From contig NC_043015.1 in the NCBI RefSeq assembly GCF_006345805.1, positions 47,616,001 to 47,680,000 on the forward strand: a stretch of DNA of 64,000 bases. The letters run 5' to 3'. How positions within the stretch are numbered: position 1 is the stretch's first letter; every line of letters starts with the position of its first letter. This DNA comes from Octopus sinensis (Eukaryota). A model generated the notes under the pieces. It was not told the origin of the DNA, did not search any database, and saw nothing but the letters and a program-made list of their open reading frames with translations. The translations under genes and the position numbers were made by a program. Positions 950-61,499 of the stretch are shown here, piece by piece.

Positions 950-1955
950 TCATCATCATCATCATCATCGTTTAACGTCTGCTTTCCATGCTACCATGGA
1001 TTGGACGATTTGACTAAGGACTGGCGAACCAGATGAGTGCACCAGACTCCAATCTGATCTGGCAGAGTTTCTACAGTGGATGCCCTTCCTAACGCCAACC
1101 ACTCTGAGAGTGTAGTGGGTGCTTTTACGTGCCACCGGTACGAGGGCCAGTCGGGCAGTACTGGCAACGGCCACGCTCAAATGATGTTTTTTCTTTGCCA
1201 CCTGCACAGGAGCCAGTCCAGCAGCACTGGCAACGACCTCGCTTGAATGTTTTCTCATGTGCCAGTAAGGCAAAGCTGGTAATGATCACACTCGAATAGT
1301 GCTTTTTACGTGCCACCAGCACAGAAGCCAGTTAGCTGCTCTGGCGATGATCATGCTTGGATGGTGCTCTTGGCGCTCCACTAGCACGGATGCCAGTCAT
1401 CAAATTTGATTTTGATTTCACTTGCTTCAACAGGTCTTCGCAAGCAGAGTTTAGTGTCCAATGAAGGAAAGGTATGCATAAGTGAGCTAGTTACATCACT
1501 GGCATAGGTCACGGGTTATGGTCTCACTTGGCTTGCCGGGTCTTTTCAAGCACAGCATATTTCCAAAGGTCTCTGTCACTAGTCATTGCTTCAGTGAAGT
1601 CTAATGTTCGAAGGTCATGCTTCACCACCTCATCCCAGGTCTTCCTGGGTCTACCTCTTCTACAGGTTCCCTCAATCCCTAGGGTATGGCTCTTTTTCCC
1701 ACAGCTATCCTTGTCCATTCTCACCACATGACCATACCAGCGCAGTCGTGTCTCTTGCACACCACATCTGATGCTTCTTAGGTCCAACTTTTCTCTCAAG
1801 GTACTTACACTCTGTCGAGTATGCACACTGACATTACACATCCATCGGAGCATACTGACTTCATTCCTTGCGAGCTTACACATGTCCTCAGCAGTCACGG
1901 CCCATGTAGCATGGCTGTTCGTACACATGCGTCATACAGTCTACCTTTTACTCTG
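950..1955 (-). mobile_element. 5'-truncated RTE-clade LINE (ORF C-terminus plus 3' UTR ending in (GAT)n)
   Basis: ORF 1524-1928 has the RTE C-terminal motifs RLRWYGHVVRM and RGRPRKTWDEVV, followed by a 3' UTR and an AAACGATGATG tail. Confidence 0.88.
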
Positions 1956-4919: not shown

Positions 4920-5410
4920 GTCTGAATGGTCTGGAAGAGTAGAGACATCAGACTCGCTACCAAATGCAGATTGGTGAATGCAATTGTCTTCCCAATAGCA
5001 ACATATGGATGCGAGACCTGGACACTGAAGAAAGCTGACCAGAATAGAATTAATGCAGTGGAGCTTCGGTGTTGGAGAAGACTTTTGCGGATTCCATGGA
5101 CAGCGAGGCTCACCAATGGAGAAGTTCTTAAGCAGATAAGGCCAAAAATGTCGCTAGAAGCTAGGTTCACCAAGCATAGATTGAGATATTTCGGTCATAT
5201 TATGCGGAGAAAATCCCTGGAAAAGGACATCATGCTCGGAATGGTGAGTGGCAAGAGAGGAAGAGGCCGACCAAGAACCCGCTGGCTTGACACCATCAAG
5301 AGTGATACCAGAATGGACATGGCCTATCTGAAGGAAGTGGCCCAGGATAGAACTGACTGGAGGACACTGATCCGAGTGACCGAGAGTCGACTTCGACTGA
5401 GCAGATAGAG
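4920..5410 (+). mobile_element. RTE/BovB-like LINE 3' fragment
   Basis: ORF 4926-5408 has YGCETWTL, ELRCWRRLLRIPW, LRYFGHIMRR and GRGRPRTRWLD, typical of the RTE C-terminus. Confidence 0.88.
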
Positions 5411-35851: not shown

Positions 35852-37261
35852 TTTTCGTCACGTGTAGTTTATTATGATTATAGATAAATTCATTGAGAAG
35901 ATAAATCCATTGAGAAGTGGTGCAAGTCACAAGTTTAGAACTCGAAACGGTCAAGAAAAGTGTGTACAATAACGAAACACGGAGCAAGGGAGGTAACTCA
36001 CAATATCAAATTAGAAAACGTTCGGTGTGAAGCTGCAATTTATGGTTCCAAATTTTGGCAAAAAAAGGCCCAGTAAATTTAAGGGGAGGGGGAAATAGAA
36101 TAAATCGAACTCCTCCCTCTGTCAGTGCTTGACTATTATTATATGTATCGATTCCGATGAGAAAAATGAAAGGCAATGTTGACACCTCGGCGGAATTTGA
36201 ACCATGAACGTAAAGAGTCGGAATTTGAACCATGAACGTAAAGAGTCGGAAGAAATGTTTCCAAGTGTTTTGTTTAATCCGTTAACGATTCTTCACACGA
36301 TTTCTTGAAGCTGCAATTGGTTTTTGATTAGTTATTGATTCAGAAGCAAATATCACGAGTTGGTGGGGACAGACACACAAACACACACACATATATACTT
36401 ATATACGATGGGCTTCTTTCAGTTTCCGTCTACCAAATCCACTCACAAGGCTTTGGTCAGCCCGAGGTTATAGTAGAAGTAGACACTTGCCCAAGGTTCC
36501 ACGCAGTGGGACTGAACCCGAAACCATGTTGTTGTTAAGCAAGCTACTTACCACACAGCCACTCCTGCGCCTATGTATTGCTAAAATAATATTCGAAGTT
36601 TCTTTATATGATCGGAAATGTAATTCCGAAGAACCTTTGCAATAAAAAAAAAGTAGGAGAAAACTTTTCAAATATAGATAAAGCAGAAGTATAAAACAAA
36701 TAAACATCATTTTCCATTTTATTGCGTTAGCTTTGTTTCATTTTGAAAACTAAAAACTCATTTTATTACTTATTATTGTTTATATTTTGAGTTACATATA
36801 TATGGGGGCGCCAAAATCTTCTTCACACGATTTCTTGAAGCTACAATTGGTTTTTGATTAGTTATGGATTCAGAAGCAAATATCACGAGTTGGGGGGACA
36901 GACACACAAACACACACACATATATACTTATATACGACGGGCTTCTTTCAGTTTCTGTCTACCAAATCCACTCACAAGGCTTTGGTCGGCCCGAGGCTAT
37001 AGTAGAAGACACTTGCCCAAGGTGCCACGCAGTGGGACTGAACCCGGAACTATGTGGTTTGTAAGCAAGCTATTTACCACACAGCCACCACTCCTGCGCC
37101 ATATCTTGAACTTTCTTTTTGTTGTTCATTATTTTGATCCAGACGTTGACAGGATTGCTATTTAGCTTTACACTGTTTGGCTTTTACGCTCTTTATAACT
37201 TACGTAACCCTATGGCATTTGTAGATTTGAAAAAACAAAACAAGCGAAAACAAACATATAA

Positions 37262-37580
37262 CATGATGATGATGATGGTGGTGGTGGTGGTGGTGGTGGT
37301 GGTGGGGTGGTGGTGGTGATGATGATGATGGTGGTTTTGGTGGTGGTGGTGGTGATGACGGTGGTGGTGGTGGTGGTGGTAGTGTTGGTGGTGGTGATGA
37401 TGATGGTGGTCGTCGTCGTCGTCGTCGTGATGATGATGACAGTGGTGGTGGTGGTAGTGTTGGTGGTGGTAGTGTTGGTGGTGGTAGTGTTGGTGGTGGT
37501 AGTGTTGGTGGTGGTGGTGATGATGATGATGGTGGTGGTGGTGGTGATGGTGGTGGTGGTGGTGGTGGTGATGGTGGTGG

Positions 37581-37614
<34 letters not shown>

Positions 37615-37643
37615 GGTGATGATGATGATGGTGGTGGTGATGA

Positions 37644-37675
<32 letters not shown>

Positions 37676-37807
37676 ATGATGATGGTGGTGGTGGTGGTAG
37701 TGTTGGTGGTGGTGTGATGATGATGATGGTGGTGGTGGTGGTGATAATGATGATGGTGGTGGTGGTGGTGATGATGATGATGGTGGTGGTGGTGGTGATG
37801 GTGGTGG

Positions 37808-37844
<37 letters not shown>

Positions 37845-37873
37845 GATGATGATGATGGTGATGGTGGTGATGA

Positions 37874-37905
<32 letters not shown>

Positions 37906-37942
37906 ATGATGATGGTGGTGGTGGTGGTAGTGTTGGTGGTGG

Positions 37943-37991
<49 letters not shown>

Positions 37992-38000
37992 GGTGGTGAA
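37262..38000. repeat. Compound (GAT)n/(GGT)n trinucleotide microsatellite, ~740 bp
   Basis: Mosaic of GAT, GGT, AGT and GTC triplets. It explains the poly-H/P/V/M ORFs. Confidence 0.97.
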
Positions 38001-38260
38001 AACAATGAAAAGAAATGAAACTTAAAAATAAATTCGAACTAGAACCGAGATCTGCAGATTAACTGAATTCATTTTCAAAAAACTCGGTAATTTCCCCTCA
38101 TTATTTGTTAGTTTCCCTTCATTAAATTGCATTAAATAAATGTTGCCAAGCAATTTTCTGAAAGGGCAAATAGAGATTTGGAGGCCGACATGACCTCAAG
38201 GACATGTGATGGGACAAATCTGGAAAGTATAATCATATTTAAATTAAGGAAAAAAAAAAG

Positions 38261-40070: not shown

Positions 40071-40116
<46 letters not shown>

Positions 40117-40908
40117 CTTTCTTTTATTCTTTTACTTGTTTCAGTCATTTGACTGTGGCCATGCTGGAGCACCTGCCTTTAGTTGAGCAAATCGACCCCA
40201 AGACTTATTCTTTGTAATCCTAGTATTTATTCTATCGGTCTCTTTTTCTGAACCGCTAAGTTATGGGGACATAAACACACCCGCATCGGTTGTCAAGCGA
40301 TGTTGGGGGGACAAACATAGACATACAAACATATACACACACATATATATACATATACATATTTACAATGGGCTTCTTTCAGTTTCCGTCTACCAAATCC
40401 ACTCACAAGGCTTTGGTCAGCCTGAAGCTATAGTAGAAGACACTTGCCCAAGGTGCCACACAGTGGAACTGAACCCGGAACCATGTGGTTGGTAAGCAAG
40501 CTACTTACCACACAGTCACTCCTACACCTATATATATATACTAGCAGTATCGCCCGGCGTTGCTCAGGTTTGTAAGGGAAATAACTATAAAGCATTTTTA
40601 GAGAGTTATAGCCAAAAAATAGCAAAAAAATGATGGTAAATTTTTTTTTGAGATTTAAGAAAGGTAGAGTTGCGTCCCCTAGACAGTTTGTGGTTCGTAT
40701 TCCTGATTCTCGACCCCATGTCGAATTTATCGATTTTTTTCAGAACTGGGGGAACTTTTCAAAATTTTCGCTGCGTTAGTTTTGAATTATGACATTGGGC
40801 TATGTGTGTGTCAAGTTTCATCAGAATTGGTTGAAAGCCATGGTCAGGGTGAGGGTACAAGCAAACAGACACACAGAAACACGCACAGACAAACTGCCGT
40901 TTATATAG

Positions 40909-47752: not shown

Positions 47753-47857
47753 ATGATAACCAAACTAGCGCATCCACGTTGGATATGTTTCCTCGTTTTG
47801 CTGTTTGTTGGTGAGGTTTTCAACCAGAATCAGACGATTGTCTACGAACAAGCTCAG
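47753..47857 (+). CDS. Argos/scoloptoxin-11-like secreted protein, coding exon 1 (signal peptide)
   Basis: Reads MITKLAHPRWICFLVLLFVGEVFNQNQTIVYEQAQ, then a perfect CAG|GTAAGT donor, phase 0. Confidence 0.85.
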
Positions 47858-47898
47858 GTAAGTGAGACAGCGAGTGAGATTGACAGAAACTAAACTTC

Positions 47899-48311
47899 GG
47901 ATCATTTCGGTTTGAACGGCAGTTTTTAACATAATTTCTAGGTAACTAAAAAATTTTAAACTTCATATACTGGTAGAATGTGTTTATAAAACATCTTTTT
48001 CTCTTGGCTTTATTGAGAAAATTCTATAGTTTGTAAGATATTTGTTGTTTTTTTTTGCTTCAATTTCTGCAATTTCAACCAATCAAATACGTCTATTGAG
48101 GTAAAACACATTCTGTGCCGTATGAATATGTCCCTCGTTTAAGAAACAGATTGGGTTTATTTACATTTGTGAATAAAAAAAGATACTCTTCCCCCTAACC
48201 CTAACCCTAAAACAGATTGAAATGTAATAGATCGATACTAGGGTCATAATTATGGGTGACAATTTCATATGACACCGCTAGAAAAAACTGCCGTTCAAAC
48301 CGAAAAGATCC
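47899..48311. mobile_element. hAT-type MITE in intron 1
   Basis: TIRs with perfect TSD TAAACTTC. Confidence 0.92.
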
Positions 48312-48942
48312 TAAACTTCTTTAATTCATTATATTATTTCTTCGTATATTTTCTGAATAATTATTTTTTCCGAAAATCGATTAGCCCTGATAGAGCAAAC
48401 TTTTGATCAAACATGTTCAAGCTGTGACCACACAATCTTTACTTGAAACAGTGTTACTTAAATGAAATTATTCAACCTATCATTCCATATTTAAAATAAG
48501 AAGTGAGATGAGGAATAGTTTCTGTTTATTTCTAGCAAGTCTGGTGAGCATGTAAAAGATTCTTCATTCGCTCCAAAATTGATTCTGACTAAACAAATAA
48601 AATAGTTTGGCGGAAAATAATAAATTTCCACCAGTTAATAAAATGTGATTCACACACACACATTATATATATATCTATCTGGTAATTGACATTTGATTTG
48701 GATGTATTTCTCCATTTTCTTATTTTGTATTATGAATTTGGGGTAAAACATTTTACCTTTGCCCATATAATACAGTAAATGAATTAATTGCATCGCAATC
48801 CTTAACATTTATGTATTAACTTTGTTGGGTACTTCACTAGCAGTATATTGGATATATGTTATCCCATATATATATATATTCATACATACATATACACTTT
48901 ATTATTTTTCCATATCTCCCATCATGTGAGGAATATTTTCAA

Positions 48943-49020
<78 letters not shown>

Positions 49021-49245
49021 TCGTTTACTCGTTTACTTGTTTCAGTCATTTGACTGCAGCCATGCTGGAGCACCGCCTTTAATCGAGCAAATCGAACCCG
49101 GGACTTATTCTTTGTAAGCCCAGTACTTATTCTATCGGTCTCTTTTGCCGAACCGCTAAGTAACGGGGACGTAAACACACCAGCATCAGTTGTCAAGCAA
49201 TGCTAGAGGGACAAACACAGACACACAAACATATACACACACATG

Positions 49246-49315
<70 letters not shown>

Positions 49316-49923
49316 TACGACAGGCTTCTTTCAGTTTCCGTCTACCAAATCCACTCACAAGGCTTTGGTCGGCCCGAGGCTATAGCAGAAGACACTTGCC
49401 CAAGGTGCCACTGAACCTGGAAGCATGTGGTTGGGAAGCAAGCTACTTATCACATAGCCACTCCTGCGCCTATAATATATATATATATATATATACTACA
49501 CATACAAATATATACATATGTGAGTGTGCATATATCAACATACCATACATTTACATGGAAATGGAAATGAACTATTCAGAATCACACACACACACATACA
49601 CACACGCACACACACGCGCGCGCACACACACACATGCATGCATGCATGCAGGAGGCTTCTTTCTGTTTCTGTCTATCAAATTCACTCATAAGTATTTGAA
49701 GCTTGAACCCGCAACTATGTAATTGGGATTAAAAAGCTTTAATTTTGGCAGAACAATGTGAACACTAAAGGGTTAAGATAAACACCAACCATATACACTC
49801 ATAAGCATGCTGTCCCAGAAGGTTGGCGTGCCGTTTTAAAAGTCCGTTCTGTTTTAGGACACACCTTATGTGTGACCAATTTTCTTCCTTTCATCATTGT
49901 AAGTTATACTTTTCTTCTTTCAG

Positions 49924-50099
49924 CGAAGTAGCTCTCCATGTTTGAGTGAAAGTACTGTTTGTGCCGACGTCTATTCATTCACCAAGACAGTAAATGGAAA
50001 AAGGCAAAAAACTGAACGCCGAGTTATCAACTGTCTGTGTCAAGGAGGACAGTGCCCAAATTCGACGACCCACAATATATACGATACATCCAAGCACAA
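49924..50099 (+). CDS. Argos-like protein, coding exon 2
   Basis: Acceptor TACTTTTCTTCTTTCAG. Reads RSSSPCLSESTVCADVYSFTKTVNGKRQKTERRVINCLCQGGQCPNSTTHNIYDTSKH(K). Donor AA|GTAAAT, phase 0 to 2. Confidence 0.9.
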
Positions 50100-50179
50100 G
50101 TAAATATGCTTTTAATCTGAAAACCTGTTATGTTTGTTGTTAAGTACGATATAATAGTGGAATTGTTTCATAGATAATA

Positions 50180-50745
50180 TTGGGTTGTCCGGAAAGTTCG
50201 TGCCGATTTTTAAGGGAAAGAAAAAGGTCAATAAATACTTGCCATTACATTTTTCATCCACCAAATATGAGCCATTTTGTTGCACAGTGTCTCTCCATCT
50301 TTCCTTTAACTTGAAAATACCCTCTTCCCAGAATTGAGGTGGTTTCATGGCAAAGAATTCATCAAGGTATCTTTTTACGTCATCCAAGGAATTGAAATTT
50401 TTACCATTAAGGCTATTCTGCAGAGACCTGAATAAGTGGAAATCCGAAGGAACAATATCTGGTGAATATGGAGGGTGGGGTAACACATCCCAGCCGAGCT
50501 GCAGCAATTTTTGTCTGGTTCCCAAAGCATCAAGTGCCAAAAATGAACTTTCTTACCTTCCATTTTAAAGGGTTACAGAATTAACACAGGTTATAGGAAC
50601 ATAAACCTTCTTCCACGAAAAGATAGCTTAAACTGTGCTCTAAATGGAGGTGTAGTCAAATCCTATTTTATGGACTCAACCATGTTCTAAAATAAGTCGA
50701 AAGGTAAGCTGCTATAAATCAGCACAAACTTTCCGGACAACCCAA
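50180..50745 (-). mobile_element. Internally deleted mariner element
   Basis: TIRs TTGGGTTGTCCGGAAAGTT, TA TSDs and transposase C-terminus LPHPPYSPDIVPSDFHLFRSLQN. Confidence 0.93.
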
Positions 50746-53356
50746 TATATCTTTTCTTAAATCAACGATTAATTAATTAAACGGTAATTACATATAAATT
50801 ATTCTTTGTACAAGTCTAAGATAAGGCTGGCAGCATATTATTTCAGCAGTGGGGGTTAGTTATTAGTTTATTTCATCCACTTACCATTAGTTTCTGAGTT
50901 CAAATCCTATAAATGGTTATTTGGTCTCTAAGAAGGAATGCAATAGCTGAACTTTGTGCTGTTCATAGAGGAACAGAGGTTTGTTCCCTTAAGTTGTATA
51001 GGTTTTGTTGAATGCGCATGGCCTAGTGGTTAGGATGTTGCACTCGTGATCGCAAGATCGAGGTTTCGATTCCCGGACTGGGTGATGTGTTGTATTCTTG
51101 CGCAATGCGCAAAACATTTCATTTTACTTTGCTCCAATCCACTCAGTTGTAAGCGATCCACCTTGCAACAGACTGACGTCCCATTCAGGGCCCTGGTCAC
51201 TTGAACACAATGGAAACTTAGAATCTGGTTCCACGAACCCCAGGAGTCGAGACAATACTTATTTCTTACCAATTTCTTCTTACCTCAAGATGATTCATAG
51301 ACTTCACACGTTGCCGAACCACTTACATGTAACTAGTGTGTTATTTCTCAACAGGTGTGGCTGTGTGATAAGCTTGCATCGCGAACACATGGTTTTGCGC
51401 TCGGCGCCTTGGGCAAGTCTCTTCTTCTATAGAATAGACTGACCAAAGCTTTGTGAGTTGATTTGGTAGATGGAAACTGAAAAGAAGCCTGTTGTAATAC
51501 ACATCTATGTGTGCGGGATTTTGTGCCTATATTTGTCACCCAGCACCTCTTGATAATCGATGTTGGTGCGTTTATGTCCCTGCAACTTAGGGGTTCAGTA
51601 AAAAAGATTGTTAGAATAAGTACCGGGCTTAAAAAATAAATCCTGGGGTCGATTCGTTTGACTAAAAATTCTTCAAGGCACTGCTCCAGCATGGCCGCAG
51701 TCTAATGACTGAAACAAGAGAAAAAAGATTAAAAAAAAAAAGGAAAAGGTGTCTTGTCTTTGAAAATACTTTTATTCAAATTGGCACTCCGTTGGTTATG
51801 ACGATGAATATTCCAGTTGATCCATTCAACAGAACAGCCTGATAGGGAAATTAGGCGCAGGAGTGGCTGTGTGGTAAGTAGCTTGCTTACCAACCACATG
51901 GTTCCGGGTTCAGCCCCACTGTGTGGCACCTTGGGCAAGTGTCTTCTGCTATAGCCCTGGGCCGACCAAAGCCTTTTGAGTGGATTTGGTTGACAGAAAC
52001 TGAAAGAAGCCCGTCGTATGTGTGTGTGTGTATATGTTTGTGTGTCTGTGTTTGTCCCCCCCAGCATCACTTGACAACCGATGCGGGTGTGTTTTCGTCC
52101 CCGTAACTTAGCAGTTCGGCAAAAGATACTGATAGAATAAGTACTAGGCTTACAAAGAATAAGTCCTGGGGTCGATTTGTTCGACTAAAGGCGGTGCTCC
52201 AGCATGGCCGCAGTCAAATGACAGAAACAAATAAAGAGTATGCAAGTGGCGGAGCACGCCACAAACAGTCTTGCCCTTAATGTAGTTCCCAGGGAGGATT
52301 CAGTGTGACACAGAATGTGACAAATGTGACATGGCTGACGCCTTGAATTACTGGTACAACTCGTTTTTGCCAGCTGAGTTGGGTGCAGCAACGTGGTGGA
52401 GGCGCAATGGCCCAGTGGTTAGGGCAGCAGACTTGCATTCGGAGGATCGCGGTTTCAATTCCCAGGCCAGGCTTTCATCTATCTGTTGATGCTTTTGGTG
52501 TCGGGGGTTGACCTGCTTTCTCATATGCGCATTTTATGAATAGCAAAGGACCACGTTTCGGACTTCTCCCACTAATGGTACGAAGACCGCTTCGCTCAAC
52601 AAACGAACAAACAAACAAGCAGCAACGTGAAATAAAGTGTCTTGCTCGAAGACCCGACTCTCGGCCTTACGATTGTCAGCCAAATACCCTCCAGGGGGTC
52701 GGTGAACTTTTATAACCAATTGCCCCCAAAATACACCAATTCACTCTGACGTTACCCCCTTGATTTGAAAGGAAGAAAATCATAGATTCTCTGAATTCAA
52801 AAGGTTTATTGGATCTGTTTTATTGAATCTATATGAATCTGTTTACACGTCCGGGCAGATGCAATGTTTTTTTTATTTATTTTATGCACCCTTTTCAAGC
52901 CTAGCCAGTCTCATGGGCCCGGTTTCCCAGTTTCTGTGGCGTATGTGTTCCCCCCAGCTGGACGGGATGCCAGTCCATTGCAGCGTTACTCAAGAAACAG
53001 GAAGAAAGTGTGAGAGAAAGTTGCCACCACCCACTGCCGGAGTCTCGTGGAACTTTTTTAGGTGCTTTCGCTCAAAAAACACACACAACACCTGGTCTGG
53101 AAATCGAAACCACGATCCTCCTCCGACCGCGAATCTGCTGCCCTAACCATTGGGCCGTTGCACCTCCACAGATGCAATGTTACCAGAAGAAAAATTTCCG
53201 TCATAACAACACGTTTTTTACTTATGTCTAATGAGACCCCATTATCAAGAATTTCATTTTTACCCCACTTGGGGTAATTTAACCCGGTTTACCGACCCCT
53301 AAGATACACGACGCCTTCATTTCTTTTATTTATTACAAGTTTCAATATCATTTCAG

Positions 53357-53465
53357 GTTACAGTTGTGTCAACCGATATCGAGCCTGGAAACATGTCGCC
53401 CCAACCAGACGGCACACGAAGTTCATCTCCAGGACAAAAAGTTTGACTTGTTTAGTTATACGACT
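53357..53465 (+). CDS. Argos-like protein, coding exon 3
   Basis: Acceptor TTTCAATATCATTTCAG. Reads (K)LQLCQPISSLETCRPNQTAHEVHLQDKKFDLFSYTT. Donor GTAAGT, phase 2 to 0. Confidence 0.9.
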
Positions 53466-53734
53466 GTAAGTAAACCATTTTAAATCTGTAACACAGCTTT
53501 CTATAACATTGGCAGTTATCAATTTGAGATGCAGGCATGGCTGTTTGGTCAAAATGCTTGTATTGCAACCACATGGTTTCTAGTTCAATCCCAATACGCT
53601 GCATCTTGGGCAAGTGTCTTTTACTATAGCCCCATGTCGACCAATGCATTCTGCGTAAATTTAGTAGATAAAAACTGTGCGGAAGCCCGTCTTGTGCATG
53701 CATGTATGTGTATATATGTATGTATGTATGTATG

Positions 53735-53920
53735 AGAAATCTCGAGTTGCACATGAGAAAGTAAGGAGGGATGTCAGGAAGGGCATCGCTGTTACACTTC
53801 CAGATGGCAAGGGTCTTCCTATGATGCTGACATGCAGTGTCTGTGCAAGACCCTGCCTCAGTAAAGCTGGACTCAAGAGTCATCTTCGTAGTCATAAAGC
53901 GAGACAGATGAGTGTCAACC
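53735..53920 (+). mobile_element. LINE ORF2 C-terminal fragment with C2H2-like knuckle
   Basis: Reads LTCSVCARPCLSKAGLKSHLRSH, the C-terminal CxxC..H..H motif of RTE-like LINEs, with no splice context. Confidence 0.6.
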
Positions 53921-54765
53921 TGGCCACTGGTGGTGGTGAATCTGTCGGGCATGTGGAAGAGAGTCTAATTCAGCAGGAGGACTTAAACGACATGCAAAAG
54001 TACATGAAGCCCAGTTACAACTACAGCCAGCTATTACCAGTAAAGGTTTTAGTTGCCAATTCTGTACAAGACACGGTAGATCTTTAGCTGGGCTAAAAAG
54101 TCACAGTCAATCACAGCACTAGTAACAGTTAAGTTCCGTGCAATGGCCATACTCAATTACGAAGGGGCAGCCATAACATGTATGTATGTAAGTGTGACCT
54201 GGTAACAATAAAATATTTTGGTACAGTTAAGAGATGGAAGAACAGACGTCTGTGAAAAGTTGCAAACAAAAGCTATTATCGTTAACAAAAAAATGTCTTT
54301 GCAAAGAACTATAAAAGATAGATACCAGTACCAAGTGCTACAGTTCGCATGAGATCTATATGGTAGCAATGACAGTTGACTGCATTTCGGGCAGTTACAC
54401 TTGAGATGGTTTGATCTGGTTGCCCCCAAAAGACTCTAAGCTAAGAGCATTAGATGTCAAATAAAAGGCATCAAAGACAAAATTGTTAATAACATTCATG
54501 TTTCTACCAAAAATTTTAATGGACAGTTGCTTGTTGATATCTTCAATCTTTGACAGAATCCTTTTTGTATTATTTACTTATGTTTTGTTTGAAAACCGTG
54601 ATTCATTTGATTCACTTTAGATTGGTGCTTGGAACTCTGTCAAATATTCTTGTTACAAGCTTTAGGCTTTTTTGAGGGGTGGGGTTACTATAAAACTCAT
54701 TTATGTATAAAACATCTCATTTTGTATTACATCTGCAAAATTTATCAAAATTATTTTATCTTCAG

Positions 54766-54888
54766 GTGAAATGCTTATGTCCTCATCACCTTGAATACCT
54801 GCCCGGTCCCTTCAATCGATCAGTGAAATATGGTAATACCAACTTTGTTACAAACCATGTTGTGCACCATTATACTTGCAACATTCCG
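54766..54888 (+). CDS. Argos-like protein, coding exon 4 (final exon not found in the window)
   Basis: Acceptor TTATTTTATCTTCAG. Reads VKCLCPHHLEYLPGPFNRSVKYGNTNFVTNHVVHHYTCNIP. Donor CCG|GTAAGT, phase 0. Confidence 0.9.
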
Positions 54889-56742
54889 GTAAGTAAGCAA
54901 ATATTGTTCGTAACCAAATATATTTTGTTGTTGGCTTTAAAATTGTTCTACCCACAGCTTTGTTACTGTTTTTGTCTTGTTCATTACAAAAGAAACTCTA
55001 GTTTATTTTCCTATGTTCTGAATTAAAATCCCACGCAGGGTTTCTTCTTTCCAGGATTAATAAAATAGCACCAATCATGTACTGAGACCGCTGTCATTCA
55101 TTGTATTCCTCTTGAAAAAAAATCTGTGATATTGCATTGTTGGAAAAAATTGCTGTTTTAATTCCAAAATTTTGAGGCGTGGCTACATGGTAAGAAGTTT
55201 GCTTTTCAGCCACATGGTTCTGAGTTCAGTCCTACTGCGTGGAAAATTAGGCAAGTGTCTTCTACTATAGCCTTGGGATGACCAAAGCCTTGTGAGTGGA
55301 TTTGGTTGACAGAAACTGAAATAAGTTCATCGTGTGTGTGTGAGACCACCACTTGACAACCAGTGTTAGTGTGTTAATGTCCTTATACCAATCTTAAAAT
55401 ATAATAAGTACTGGGATCGATTCGTTCGACTAAAATTCTTTAAGGTTGTAACCTAGCATGACCGTATTCTAATGACTGAAAGAAGTAAAAGATCAAAGGT
55501 AAAACATAAATGTAGGAATATTTAGAAATATATTTCAACAGACATAGCTGTATGAATAAGAAACTTTCTTTCCAACCATGCATTCTTGGGTTCAGTCCCA
55601 CTGCCTGACACCTTGGGCATCTTCAACAAGAACCTTGGTCTTCACATGCATAAGTAGGCAAGTCCTAACTCACTAAGAGTTACATACCCATTGGCTTACC
55701 CTCACCCAGTTTAGCCCACTATTTGAAGCGGTTTACTGGGGTGTAGCTGCCATTACATGCGAACAGCTACTTGGTGCCACAGATGAGAGTTAATTGCCAT
55801 CCCTCATAATACAATATGTTCTGCATCAAAGGTGCCACTCCTCCTTAACATCCTATGCACTTTGAGATGGTGCAACCAGGAATACAGTATCAAGTTGTAC
55901 TTCATTCTTTAAGATGTTGAAGAATAATATAATTGAAATTTGCTCACTATTTCAGCTAAATATCATTTGAATAGCTATATAAAGAGGTTCTCTTTGTGTT
56001 ATCGATGACTAGTTGTGGTTTAAACCAAAGTCAGCCTTTATTTTATATATATATATATGTTTTGTTCTATATTATTATGTTTGACCTTAATGTTCATATG
56101 TAGTGGTTTAATAAATTATGTGATTGGGTATTATCTGGTAGTTGATCATTGATTAAGATGTGTTTCTCCATTTTCTTATTTTGTATATATATATATATAT
56201 ATATAATAACAAAATAATAAATAAAACATATGCATATATACATACATATATGTATGTACCTACATCTATATGTATATATACATGCATATATAGGTACAGG
56301 ACACCAAAAAAAACGTCGAACTCAATGAGAAACGAAAACATAAACACAAAACCAAGAAATGGACATTTTTCTTAAACAACGAAAAAATAAGACATACAAC
56401 ACAAGGAAATAACAAGACATACAACACATGGAACATTCCCCTTCTTCAGCCGACTCTGTTTCATCTACTCCACATTTCAAATGTAAAGGCGAGACACGAC
56501 TTCATTGAAACAATCCTTCCCGCAAAAGCAAATTAAATAAAATTTGAGATTTTTTTGCAGAGGGGTAAAAGTGGTAACAAAAACAGGACAGTAAAAACAA
56601 TACAAAATATAAACAGTAAAAGACAGGACAAGGAGAATAACAGTAACACGAACATTAAGGGCTGTTAAGCCAGAACGAATGAAAAAATATTTTTGTACGT
56701 ACCTACATCTATATGTATATATACATGCAAAAAAACGTCGAA

Positions 56743-56754
<12 letters not shown>

Positions 56755-56813
<59 letters not shown>

Positions 56814-57008
56814 TGTGTATATGTATATATATGTATGTATATATATATATGTATATATATATATATGTATATATATGTATATATATATGTGTATATATAT
56901 ATGTATGTATATATATGTATATATATATGTATGTATATATATGTATATATATGTATGTATCTATATATATATATATCATCATCATCATCATCATTTATGT
57001 ATGTATGC

Positions 57009-57055
<47 letters not shown>

Positions 57056-57095
57056 ATATATAATATATATATATATATATAAATATATCTATCTA
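56755..57095. repeat. Compound (TG)n/(TA)n/(TATG)n microsatellite
   Basis: Seen directly. It explains the Y/I/H/T-rich ORFs. Confidence 0.97.
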
Positions 57096-57746
57096 CATAG
57101 TATACGTGTGTATTTATACTATATATGTATACCTATTTGTGTGGAGGTGGGGTGCGAGATCAAAAATATAGACTACAGTGATTTGTGATAAAAAAAAATA
57201 AATGCGCCCTTTTAAAGCCTAGCCAGGCTCATGGGCCCGGTTTCCCGGTTTCTATGGCATATGTGTTCCCCAGCTGGGCGGAACGCTAGTCCATCGCAGC
57301 GTTACTCATTTTTGCCAGCTGAGTGAACTGGAGCAACGTGAAATGAAGTGTTCTACTCAAGAACACAATGCGTTGCCCGGTCCAGGAATCGAAACCACAA
57401 TCTTACGATCATGATGCTGACACCCCTAACCACTAAGCCACGTGCTTCCACACAGTGATTCATGAATAGAAAATATGCTTATTTGTTTGCAAACTTTCAT
57501 TTTTATTTCTTCTCATTTTCAGAATAATGGAAATTAAATATGTTGGACAATTGAAAGCTTTATGGTGGAAAATAAGTTGACCAATCACTAAAGGATAACC
57601 AATATTATGACACAAAAATATCCAAAAAGAAAATTTTAGTATATACGCATCGTTTGATTAGAATCTGTGAAATATTCCGATGATCAGATTATTCTCTATG
57701 AAAATAAAATATTTCTAATACATCATGGTTGTTCCTTATTTTTTTT

Positions 57747-58560: not shown

Positions 58561-61499
58561 GTCTGATGGAGGGTATTACTTGTTTCAGTCATTGGACTGT
58601 AGCCATGCTGGGGTACCGCCTTAAAGGGTTTAGTCGAACAAATCGACCCCAGGACTTATTTTTTAAAGTCTGGTGTTTATTGTATTAGTCTTTTTGTTGA
58701 ATTGCTCAATTTCATGGACATAAATAAACCAACACCAGCCTTCGAGTGGTGATGGGGAGACAAACAAAAACACAAACACACGCATACATATACATGATGG
58801 GAGATAGTTACATAGTTTCCATCTTCTATATTCACCGACAGGGCATTGGTCAGTCTGGTACTATATTCAAAGACACTTGTCCAAAGTACCGTGCTGTGGG
58901 ACTGAACCCAAAACCACGTGGTTGCAATGTAAACTTCTTAACCACACAGCCATGCCTACTAAGATGCCTTAAAAAGTCTGCTGTTGTTTGTCAACAAGAA
59001 CTTCCGGTGGTGTATACATCATCATCATCATTATCATCGTTTAACATCCGCTTTCCATGCTAGCATGGGTTGGACGGTTCAACTGGGGTCTGGGAAGCCC
59101 GAAGGCTGCACCAGGCTCCAGTCAGATCTGGCAGTGTTTCTACAGCTGGATGCCGCCCTTCCTAATGCCAACCACTCCGTGAGTGTAGTGGGTGCTTTTT
59201 ACGTGCCACCAACACAGGTGCCAGACATCAATTATACAAACACTGTGAAAGGTGTATATGTGTCTGTCTGTGTATGGGAGAGAGGAAGAAAGAGGAGAAA
59301 AGAGAAAAAGAGAAAGAAAAGCAAAAGAGAGTGTATGTGTATGTGTGTGTGTGTATGTGTGTGTCCCCAAGTCAGAAACAGACTATGTACAAGCAGGGAA
59401 GACCTATGCGGTTGGCTACTTTTTGATTCACCTCATGCATTAGCCAAAAGTAGTAATGATGCAAGAAGGTAGGAAAGTAACGATGGCATCTGTCCCACCT
59501 GCTATGTACTCCCGTGGCACCTGGCACTTCTTTCTCACTTGGTTTTTTTTTTTTTGTTTTAAGCTTGAAGGAAATACCAAAAATGTTGGGTTTTATCTTT
59601 ACACTGGATCTGCCTCTTTCACAGCAAATCTGGTGCCACGGGGAAAATGCACACTTCCAGTACCACTATAACGTTTCAGTATAGAAGCCCGTCGTATATA
59701 TATAAAGTTGGTCCCTTGCCGAACCGCTAAGTTACAAGGACGTATACACACGAACATCGGTTGTCAAGCGATGGTGGGGCGTACAAACACAGACACACTA
59801 ACATACACACACACACACAAACACACACATATATATATATATGACGGGCTTCTTTCACATCATCAGTCTTAGATCTGTAATATGTATGTATGTATGTATG
59901 TTTGTATGTATGTATATGTGTGTATGTACGTATGTATGAGTGTGTGTATCTTTGTGTTGTGTTTGTCTGCCACCACCACCACCACTTGACAACCAGTGTT
60001 GGTTTGTTTACGTCCTTGTAACTTAGAGTTTCGGTAAAAAAAAAAAACTGTTTTAATAAGTACCAAATTTAGAAAAAACCCTTCAAGGCGGTGCCCCAGT
60101 TCAATGATTGCAATAAGTAAAAGAAAGAAAGAAAAAAGATCTTTTCACTTTGACCGACAGATTTTTAAAATAATTTCTTTGTAACTAAACACTTTTAAAC
60201 TTCGTATACTGGTAGAATGTGTTTATAAAACATCTTTTTCTCTTGGCTTTCTTGAGAAAATTCTGTAGTTTGTAAGCTATTTGCTGTTTAATTTCTTGCA
60301 TTTCGGCAATTTCAACCAATCAATGACGTCTATTGAGGTGAATACAATTTCTGCGGTCCTAGCTCAACGCCATTAATTTAAGCAGATTATGCAACGCCAT
60401 AGCCACAAACTGTATGCTGGGATTAGTTATTTTCGTTGGGGAGGATATTACTTTAGAGAGATTGTGAAACCTATCTTTTTTAAAAGTAAACTCATAAACA
60501 CAAATATCTTGCTTTGATCAAGACAGAATCATATCCAATACAGATAAACAGATACGTACTTTTGATTTAACGAACTCGATACACGATAACACTAACAAAA
60601 GACACGGAGTGATAAAAACAAAAGATTAAGAAAAATTATCGGTGTATTGCATTAATACTTCCGTTTAAATTATAAAACTACGATAATAGTTATCGATTGG
60701 CTTTTGTTATAGTAATAAGCTATTTTATAGCTTATATAAACGCTCAAGATAAAAGGCGGGAAAATAGCGTTTAGAAGGTACCATTTTAAAAGTAATAATC
60801 CTTTCTACTATCGGAACGATGTCTGAAATTTGAGGGGAATATTGTTTTTGCAGGAGTGGAAAGGCAACGTCGACCTTGGCTTGAACTTAGAACAACAAAA
60901 CGAACGAAATGCCGCTATTCATTTTTCCCGCTGTGCTAACGATTCTGCCACCTCGCCAATAATAACTAACAATAGTAAAAAGAAAAAAAAATGGCGGGTT
61001 ACTCCTCATACAGATAATACCTGCATTATACCCGGGAGCAAAGGCGGCCAGCTGGCAGAATCGTTAGCACGCCGGACGAAATGCTTTGCGGTATTTCGTG
61101 CGCCGCTGCGTTCTGAGTTCAAATTCCGCCGAAGTCGACTTTGCCTTTCATCCTTTCGGGGTCGATAAATTAAGTACCAGTTACGCATTGAGGTCGATGT
61201 AATCGACTTAATACTTATGTCTGTCCTTGTTTGTCCCCTCTGTGTTTAGCCCCTTGTGGGCAATAAAGAAATAAGAATCGTCAGCGTTCCATGTAAAATA
61301 CTTGGCGACATTTCGTCCATCTTTACAATCTGAGTTCAAATTCAACTGAGGTCGACTTTACTTTTATCCTTCGAGGTCGATAAAATAAGTGCTAGTGGGA
61401 TCGATGTAATCTACTTACCCCTCTCCTAAAATTGCTAGATATATTAAATAATGTATTAAATTGTTGTTTGTATTATTAGTTATCCAAATTGTGGAAGAA

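Follow-up and report, generated by a model that had tools for sequence, protein, structure and literature searches.

A Two-Domain Argos-like Gene of Octopus sinensis and Its Mollusc Family

Introduction

The structure of a macro-conotoxin has been solved (Khilji et al. 2025, Protein Sci 34:e70333, PMC12514838) and proved similar to domains 1-2 of Argos; the authors called its domain the "two-finger toxin" (2FTX) fold. In the same work, ~1800 Argos-like secreted protostome proteins were sorted into 12 clusters, of which only A and D consist of two-domain proteins. Octopus is absent from the main text of that paper, and its sole octopus sequence is the three-domain protein that represents cluster J. 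Here, we describe a gene of the octopus Octopus sinensis that encodes an Argos relative with two domains. It lies in a stretch of 64,000 nucleotides (contig NC_043015.1, positions 47,616,001 to 47,680,000 of the forward strand), referred to below as the window, in which position 1 is the first letter.

Argos requires its domain 3 to clamp the epidermal growth factor (EGF) domain of Spitz, and a kappa-scoloptoxin has been described as an Argos-like three-domain protein (Khilji et al. 2025, PMC12514838). The SLPTX11 toxins share a frame of 16 cysteines (Cys) arranged as 6+4+6, with recurrent truncations; full-length members, which are three-domain products of Scolopendra venom glands, have been reported to act on Kv channels or as anticoagulants (centipede review). 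In two-domain macro-conotoxin genes, introns of phases 0,2,0 split the coding sequence into four exons, and a gastropod three-domain gene, which the authors tested as a possible conotoxin ancestor, has phases 0,1,0 (2FTX work, 2025).

Taken as a whole, the evidence makes it very likely that the window holds a real, single-copy, five-exon gene for a secreted protein of 175 amino acids (aa), an Argos relative with two two-finger domains that most likely acts as a soluble ligand-binding modulator and belongs to a two-domain mollusc family. This is not a new kind of system: gene model and protein superfamily alike are already public, and the family was first described in 2025. The result gives a name and a fold to an octopus protein that RefSeq lists as uncharacterized.

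Gene Structure and Octopod Orthologues

The gene is encoded on the plus strand. Coding exon 1 (47753-47857, 105 nt) carries the ATG, the signal peptide and the first mature residues (MITKLAHPRWICFLVLLFVGEVFNQNQTIVYEQAQ) and is followed by a phase-0 intron. Exon 2 (49924-50099, 176 nt) contributes Cys 1-5 of domain 1 (PC..VC..CLC..CP) and precedes a phase-2 intron, while exon 3 (53357-53465, 109 nt) supplies the last Cys of domain 1 (LCQP) together with the first Cys of domain 2 and ends at a phase-0 intron. Exon 4 (54766-54888, 123 nt) encodes Cys 8-10 of domain 2 (CLCPHH ... YTCNIP) and is likewise followed by an intron of phase 0. GTAAGT or GTAAAT follows each of these four exons at the donor side, and the acceptors consist of a pyrimidine tract ending in CAG. 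Spliced together, the four exons give a clean frame of 171 aa with intron phases 0, 2, 0, 0 and ten Cys in the mature part, divided 6+4; an eleventh Cys (C12) lies inside the signal peptide. An earlier reading made from the sequence alone (the sequence-only reading) had proposed exactly these four exons, and all of its coordinates, splice sites and phases turned out to be exact.

That reading missed the fifth coding exon (57523-57537), which consists of the four codons NNGN and a TAA stop behind the acceptor ttttatttcttctcattttcag. Exon 5 completes the 175-aa protein, so that the reading frame ends at 57537, inside the window. A probable 3' untranslated region (UTR) follows at 57538-57746, with AATAAA at 57703-57708; it was recognized only by its match to the consensus. 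The N-terminus of the protein is hydrophobic (WICFLVLLFVG) behind basic residues, with a modelled helix at residues 8-23, and an equivalent hydrophobic N-terminus is present in all relatives. The protein is probably N-glycosylated.

Profile hidden Markov models (HMMs) of the single domains picked out exons 2-4: the domain-1 HMM matched exon 2 at E = 7e-18, its sole significant match in the window, and the domain-2 HMM matched exon 3 (E = 1e-10) and exon 4 (E = 8e-10). A search of the window for paralogues of the octopus gene found none. Like the window, the O. bimaculoides locus described below holds one copy of the gene and no tandem expansion.

Owing to the inclusion of exon 5, the 175-aa product is identical, residue for residue, to RefSeq XP_029648247.1, "uncharacterized protein LOC115222226 [Octopus sinensis]", and the gene in the window is most likely LOC115222226. 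The gene is already annotated in three Octopus genomes; O. vulgaris has an orthologue. The sequence-only reading had called it hidden; this holds for the prokaryote-style open reading frame (ORF) track, in which the gene could not be seen, but not for the public annotation. In the literature searched, neither the gene nor the protein accessions are mentioned, and octopus salivary gland and Argos were not found together.

Protein searches identified orthologues in O. bimaculoides (93% identical, 175 aa) and Argonauta hians (65%, 177 aa), both of which stop four residues past the end of the exon 4 equivalent. Exact spliced mapping showed that the O. bimaculoides locus (L001) has five exons of the same lengths with the same splice sites; neither the ORF nor any of the ten Cys or eight splice sites is disrupted. 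The two loci are collinear, with 85-95% nucleotide identity that extends through the introns. The orthologue of exon 1 lies at L001 10001-10105, exon 2 is 97.7% identical to its counterpart at the nucleotide level, and the orthologue of exon 5, at L001 15999-16013, reads GNGN and TAA. The block 57452-57746, comprising exon 5 and the probable 3' UTR, corresponds to L001 15927-16222 with 94.9% identity. All substitutions between the two Octopus species spare the Cys frame.

The Argonauta protein bears the name LOC115222226, like the O. sinensis gene, and the three-domain protein of Argonauta is named LOC115226858. These locus names look as if they had been carried over from the annotation of O. 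sinensis and not given independently.

Homology to Argos and Predicted Fold

The sequence-only reading had assigned the protein to the Argos family by eye. We compared a profile of the 27-sequence family with PDB sequences and obtained "Protein giant-lens" (3C9A/3CGU) at E = 4e-8. The profile alignment runs over domains 1 and 2 of Argos (chain residues 27-123), where nine Cys fall in register and the CxCP and CQP motifs of 3C9A are matched; a weak second match lands on Argos domain 3. The Pfam Argos family, PF11581, was matched weakly by 4 of the 27 relatives, with a best E of 5.9e-4.

Structure prediction agreed with the profile. We modelled the O. bimaculoides orthologue (93% identical to the window protein) with AlphaFold2 on a 34-sequence alignment, which gave a predicted local distance difference test score (pLDDT) of 92.9 and a predicted template modelling score (pTM) of 0.82. 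The depth of the alignment was needed: with two sequences, the pLDDT was 36. The model comprises four beta-hairpins, two per domain, at residues 46-70, 86-97, 112-131 and 150-168. In a Foldseek search of the PDB, the only hits at E <= 1e-3 were four Argos chains (E = 2e-6 to 9e-6, probability 1.00), with template modelling (TM) scores of 0.54-0.57 by query length and root-mean-square deviations of 3.7-5.6 A; the next match had E = 0.18.

By profile and model, the octopus protein has the Argos fold and is homologous to domains 1-2 of Drosophila Argos, with two predicted disulfide-locked "two-finger" beta-hairpin domains. The alignment drawn by eye was correct, and so was the description of the protein as compact and without the long fly insertion. 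With Argos (PDB 3C9A/3CGU, PF11581) it shares predicted secretion, domains 1-2, nine Cys, the CxCP and CQP motifs and the fold; it differs in lacking domain 3 and the long flexible insertions, and the identity is ~16%. Octopus has, in addition, a separate three-domain Argos-like gene at another locus, the one that represents cluster J, whose three exons encode the signal, domains 1+2 and domain 3, respectively.

A Two-Domain Family in Molluscs

Searched with a profile built from the two octopod proteins, a set of 1.84 billion representative proteins yielded 26 relatives, nearly all of them 150-220 aa long. They share the frame C-C-CxC-C-C | C-CxC-C and motifs such as AVCAD, NCxCP, CQP and CxCPxH. 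Named members come from a chiton (Liolophura), from bivalves (Crassostrea, Solemya, Pinctada, Mercenaria, Ruditapes, Mactra, Dreissena, Potamilus and Sinanodonta) and from gastropods (Haliotis, Patella, Gigantopelta, Elysia, Physella, Bulinus, Bradybaena, Candidula and Nucella), and all of these are labelled uncharacterized or hypothetical. None of them has a third module of six Cys, and ~30 mollusc relatives end near the tenth Cys. Public sequencing runs contain a 50%-identical relative, which groups with the octopods, as an uninterrupted 167-aa ORF on ~74 short contigs (1-2 kb) that resemble complementary DNA (cDNA). The ORF ends right past the last Cys, and no module-like sequence was found in the 3' UTR.

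A quick tree placed the cephalopods in a clade (support 99) within a larger mollusc subfamily, apart from a bivalve subfamily with an "FYFY" tail. We conclude that this is a separate mollusc family, present in a chiton, bivalves, gastropods and cephalopods and always without domain 3, and that its octopus member is not the octopus orthologue of Argos. A two-domain Argos-like (2FTX) branch is thus conserved in these four groups beside the separate three-domain gene.

The two-sequence profile also gave five stretches of similarity (E = 7.8e-6) in an 828-aa "mucin-16-like" protein of the fish Erpetoichthys (P0022). We rejected this candidate as spurious: it has 12 Cys only, consists of serine/threonine-rich repeats and was not matched by the 34-sequence HMM, and it is not a vertebrate Argos-like protein.

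We then compared the family with the published 2FTX clusters, whose representatives were taken from Supporting File 4 of the 2FTX preprint. The family HMM scored highest, at 103.5 bits over the full length, with the two-domain representative of cluster A, Sinanodonta woodiana KAL3848361.1. The spider giant-lens of cluster C reached 26.4 bits, the Bombus "kappa-scoloptoxin(11)-Ssd1b-like" protein of cluster E 24.6 bits and the octopus three-domain protein of cluster J 13.3 bits. With hhalign, the family matched cluster A at 99.3% (P = 7e-21), and the octopus protein alone scored 36.8 bits against KAL3848361.1. In accession and locus tag, KAL3848361.1 adjoins KAL3848362.1, a Sinanodonta member of the family, which suggests that the two are neighbouring genes.

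Like cluster A, the octopus protein is probably secreted, has ~150-170 mature residues and 10 Cys, and comprises two two-finger domains with no domain 3. In the tree, however, the clade of the octopods lies in the other mollusc subfamily than the cluster A representative, which belongs to the FYFY-tail subfamily. From these sequence comparisons, we infer that the octopus gene is a previously unremarked member of the two-domain 2FTX family (cluster A).

The link to scoloptoxin-11 proposed in the sequence-only reading is real at the level of the family, in view of the 6+4+6 frame of SLPTX11 and the Argos-like character of kappa-scoloptoxin. The family matched the Bombus kappa-scoloptoxin(11)-like protein at 93.7% in hhalign; a Cherax "Sm6a-like" protein showed no similarity to the family HMM. 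Compared by description, the octopus protein has the first 10 of the 16 positions of the truncation-tolerant SLPTX11 frame C-C-CxC-C-C-C-CxC-C-C-C-CxC-C-C, a likeness that by itself does not establish membership. It differs from the centipede toxins in being the product of an orthologue-conserved mollusc gene.

An annotation artefact or a dying gene, with exons open by chance or a pseudogene left by the loss of domain 3, is barely credible in the light of this family. Such an explanation would draw on the exon model being known from the genome sequence alone in O. sinensis, and on introns that are large and filled with repeats, including a mariner fragment and microsatellites. It is at odds with an ORF, ten Cys and eight splice sites that are intact and conserved in O. 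bimaculoides, with an exon pattern kept back to oyster, abalone and chiton, with a relative that runs uninterrupted on ~74 short cDNA-like contigs, and with the very confident fold predicted from a deep alignment.

Absence of a Third Module

In the sequence-only reading, a third module of six Cys had been expected in a phase-0 exon downstream of exon 4, possibly outside the window, which would have made the gene a three-module orthologue of Argos. Exon 4 does reach a strong phase-0 donor before any stop codon, and three domains are the rule in Argos and in most 2FTX proteins. The next exon, however, is the one at 57523-57537, with four codons and a stop, and its addition makes the product identical to the RefSeq protein. 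The same ending is seen in O. bimaculoides and Argonauta; the mollusc relatives stop near their tenth Cys, and the cDNA-like contigs past domain 2.

Searches of the window gave the same answer. Beyond exon 2, the domain-1 HMM found nothing better than E = 0.05 in the six-frame translation; tblastn with domain 3 of octopus three-domain proteins returned noise only (best E = 0.39), and so did the stop-free stretches downstream of exon 4 when they were checked for a third module. The octopus three-domain Argos-like gene lies at a different locus. The predicted third Cys module does not exist, and we regard a three-module Argos orthologue at this locus as very improbable.

Possible Function

The fold suggests how the protein might work. 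An extracellular protein ligand would be bound by the finger loops, and the protein would serve as a soluble decoy or modulator in an endogenous, non-venom role. Its conservation in chitons, bivalves, gastropods and cephalopods makes the family a good candidate to study as a modulator that acts outside the cell on mollusc growth-factor signalling.

Several points weigh against this overall reading of the gene and its protein. Ligand binding is an analogy, not a result, and is suggested by the parallel with Argos, Ly6/uPAR and the ectodomains of TGF-beta receptors. The hydrophobic N-terminus is the only feature that points to secretion. The homology to Argos becomes visible only through a family profile or a model: the octopus protein alone matched no Pfam family at E <= 10, the Argos family PF11581 proposed in the sequence-only reading included, and against PDB sequences it gave noise only, with GLD2 at E = 0.49. 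Constraint on the gene is modest and poorly measured, with a ratio of nonsynonymous to synonymous substitution rates (dN/dS) against O. bimaculoides of 0.47 (0.62 for the mature part) from 28 substitutions, which are too few to tell relaxed from purifying selection. Membership in cluster A, as opposed to a neighbouring group, would follow from the comparison with one representative sequence.

Whether the ligand resembles EGF is doubtful. The canonical clamp of Argos around EGF is unlikely because domain 3 is missing and octopus has a separate three-domain gene. A working two-domain trap for EGF ligands with another binding mode, using domains 1-2 alone or a dimer that rebuilds the clamp, is conceivable by analogy. 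The homology to Argos in sequence and fold speaks for it, as do the presence of EGF receptor (EGFR) signalling in molluscs and the suggestion of the 2FTX authors that Argos-like proteins could act as modulators of EGFR signalling (Khilji et al. 2025). Since the octopus three-domain gene is the more natural equivalent of Argos, we consider such a trap unlikely, and the proposal of a soluble modulator is kept here in its general form.

The Argos fold has also been recruited into venoms, in centipedes and in cone snails, where truncated forms with fewer domains recur. The octopus protein could accordingly be imagined as a toxin of venom or saliva, made by the posterior salivary gland as a shortened Argos-fold protein and comparable to truncated SLPTX11 or to macro-conotoxins. 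The family profile resembles the MLSML macro-conotoxins (hhalign 95.2%, P = 2.9e-8), with which the gene has phases 0,2,0 in common, and a dN/dS of 0.47 is not very low. It is nevertheless below 1, and the substitutions against O. bimaculoides leave the Cys frame untouched. Neither the window nor the O. bimaculoides locus shows a second copy or a tandem expansion of the gene, which has 1:1 orthologues among octopods at 93% and 65% identity. Its relatives occur in chitons, oysters, mussels, abalone and limpets, which are non-venomous, and the literature links neither the accessions nor Argos-like proteins to octopus salivary glands. A venom role therefore appears improbable next to the endogenous one.

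Intron Phases and Possible Origin of Macro-Conotoxins

The octopus phases of 0,2,0,0, established by exact spliced mapping, recur in abalone, where the last exon consists of the stop codon alone. The oyster gene has four exons with phases 0,2,0, and the chiton gene has phases 0,2,0,1. The positions of the introns are conserved as well: intron 1 lies directly before Cys 1 and intron 3 directly before the second CxCP, and in each of these four molluscs intron 2 falls 2-4 residues ahead of Cys 6.

We compared the family with twelve conotoxin sequences taken from Supporting File 2 of the 2FTX preprint. All twelve scored positive with the family HMM, at 5-21 bits, and all reversed sequences were negative. 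In hhalign, the alignment of the family with MLSML (95.2%, P = 2.9e-8) has the Cys in register. The MLSML profile reached 0.4-8% with gastropod three-domain proteins, values that, being obtained with a profile against single sequences, are not strictly comparable with profile-profile scores.

Macro-conotoxins (MLSML, MMLFM and related) thus resemble the octopus protein in having two 2FTX domains without domain 3 and in the phases 0,2,0, the comparison being of phases and not of positions. They differ in being hypervariable, expressed in the venom gland and restricted to Conoidea, and MLSML has 12 Cys, whereas the octopus gene is conserved and single-copy. Conotoxin-like hypervariability is not seen at this locus, given the 93% identity between two Octopus species and the dN/dS of 0.47, and the host is not a conoidean.

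The octopus three-domain gene contains a phase-0 intron two residues past the last Cys of domain 2 (L011 8234/9719, Octopus vulgaris). Intron 4 of the gene in the window (54889/57522), also of phase 0, sits at the same place as this intron between domains 2 and 3. An intron 2-3 residues past the last Cys of domain 2 is also found in abalone and, with phase 1, in chiton; the oyster gene lacks it.

The domain count, the phases, the profile similarity and the place of intron 4 together suggest a loss of the domain 3 exon, with later recruitment into conoidean venom. The two-domain family may have arisen from a three-domain Argos-like gene in this way, and intron 4 with its mini-exon may be a vestige of the loss. 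We tentatively propose, at somewhat less than even chances, that the two-domain mollusc family is the endogenous source of the two-domain 2FTX macro-conotoxins. If true, this would answer a question left open in 2025, namely, where the two-domain macro-conotoxins came from.

Repeats and Other Features of the Window

Intron 2 contains a mariner remnant, a 142-aa ORF on the minus strand (50112-50540) that lies 13 nt past the donor of exon 2. It resembles the C-terminal catalytic part of the Mos1 transposase (PDB 3HOS/4U7B, E = 8.5e-23), with residues 7-93 aligning to Mos1 255-341, and also SETMAR; Pfam gave no match. Part of the mariner stretch, ~50180-50744, is absent from the O. bimaculoides intron. 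Within intron 4, a microsatellite-rich stretch of ~1.7 kb (~55726-57452), with TG/CA and TATG-type runs, is missing from O. bimaculoides, where its flanks lie ~30 bp apart (L001 15895-15927). The microsatellites yield spurious long ORFs rich in C, V, Y and I on both strands at 56477-57188.

Outside the gene, a trinucleotide-repeat tract at 37193-38005 produces poly-His, poly-Ser/Pro and poly-Val/Met ORFs of 136-270 aa on both strands; it is of low complexity, with no evidence of a gene. Two ORFs, at 1524-1928 (minus strand, 134 aa) and 4926-5408 (plus strand, 160 aa), resemble each other in a C-terminal motif (RLRWYGHV.RM / LRYFGHIMRR ... GR.RGRPR..W). They look like the tails of retroelement ORFs, and Pfam gave none at E <= 0.01. 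Finally, a dispersed repeat of ~200-400 bp occurs in both orientations, for example at 40115-40512, 49018-49244, 51870-52235 and 58576-58975. Within the 26-kb O. bimaculoides locus it has matches of 67-87% identity at no fewer than 4 sites, and it is presumably an element of the short interspersed nuclear element (SINE) type, both intronic and intergenic.

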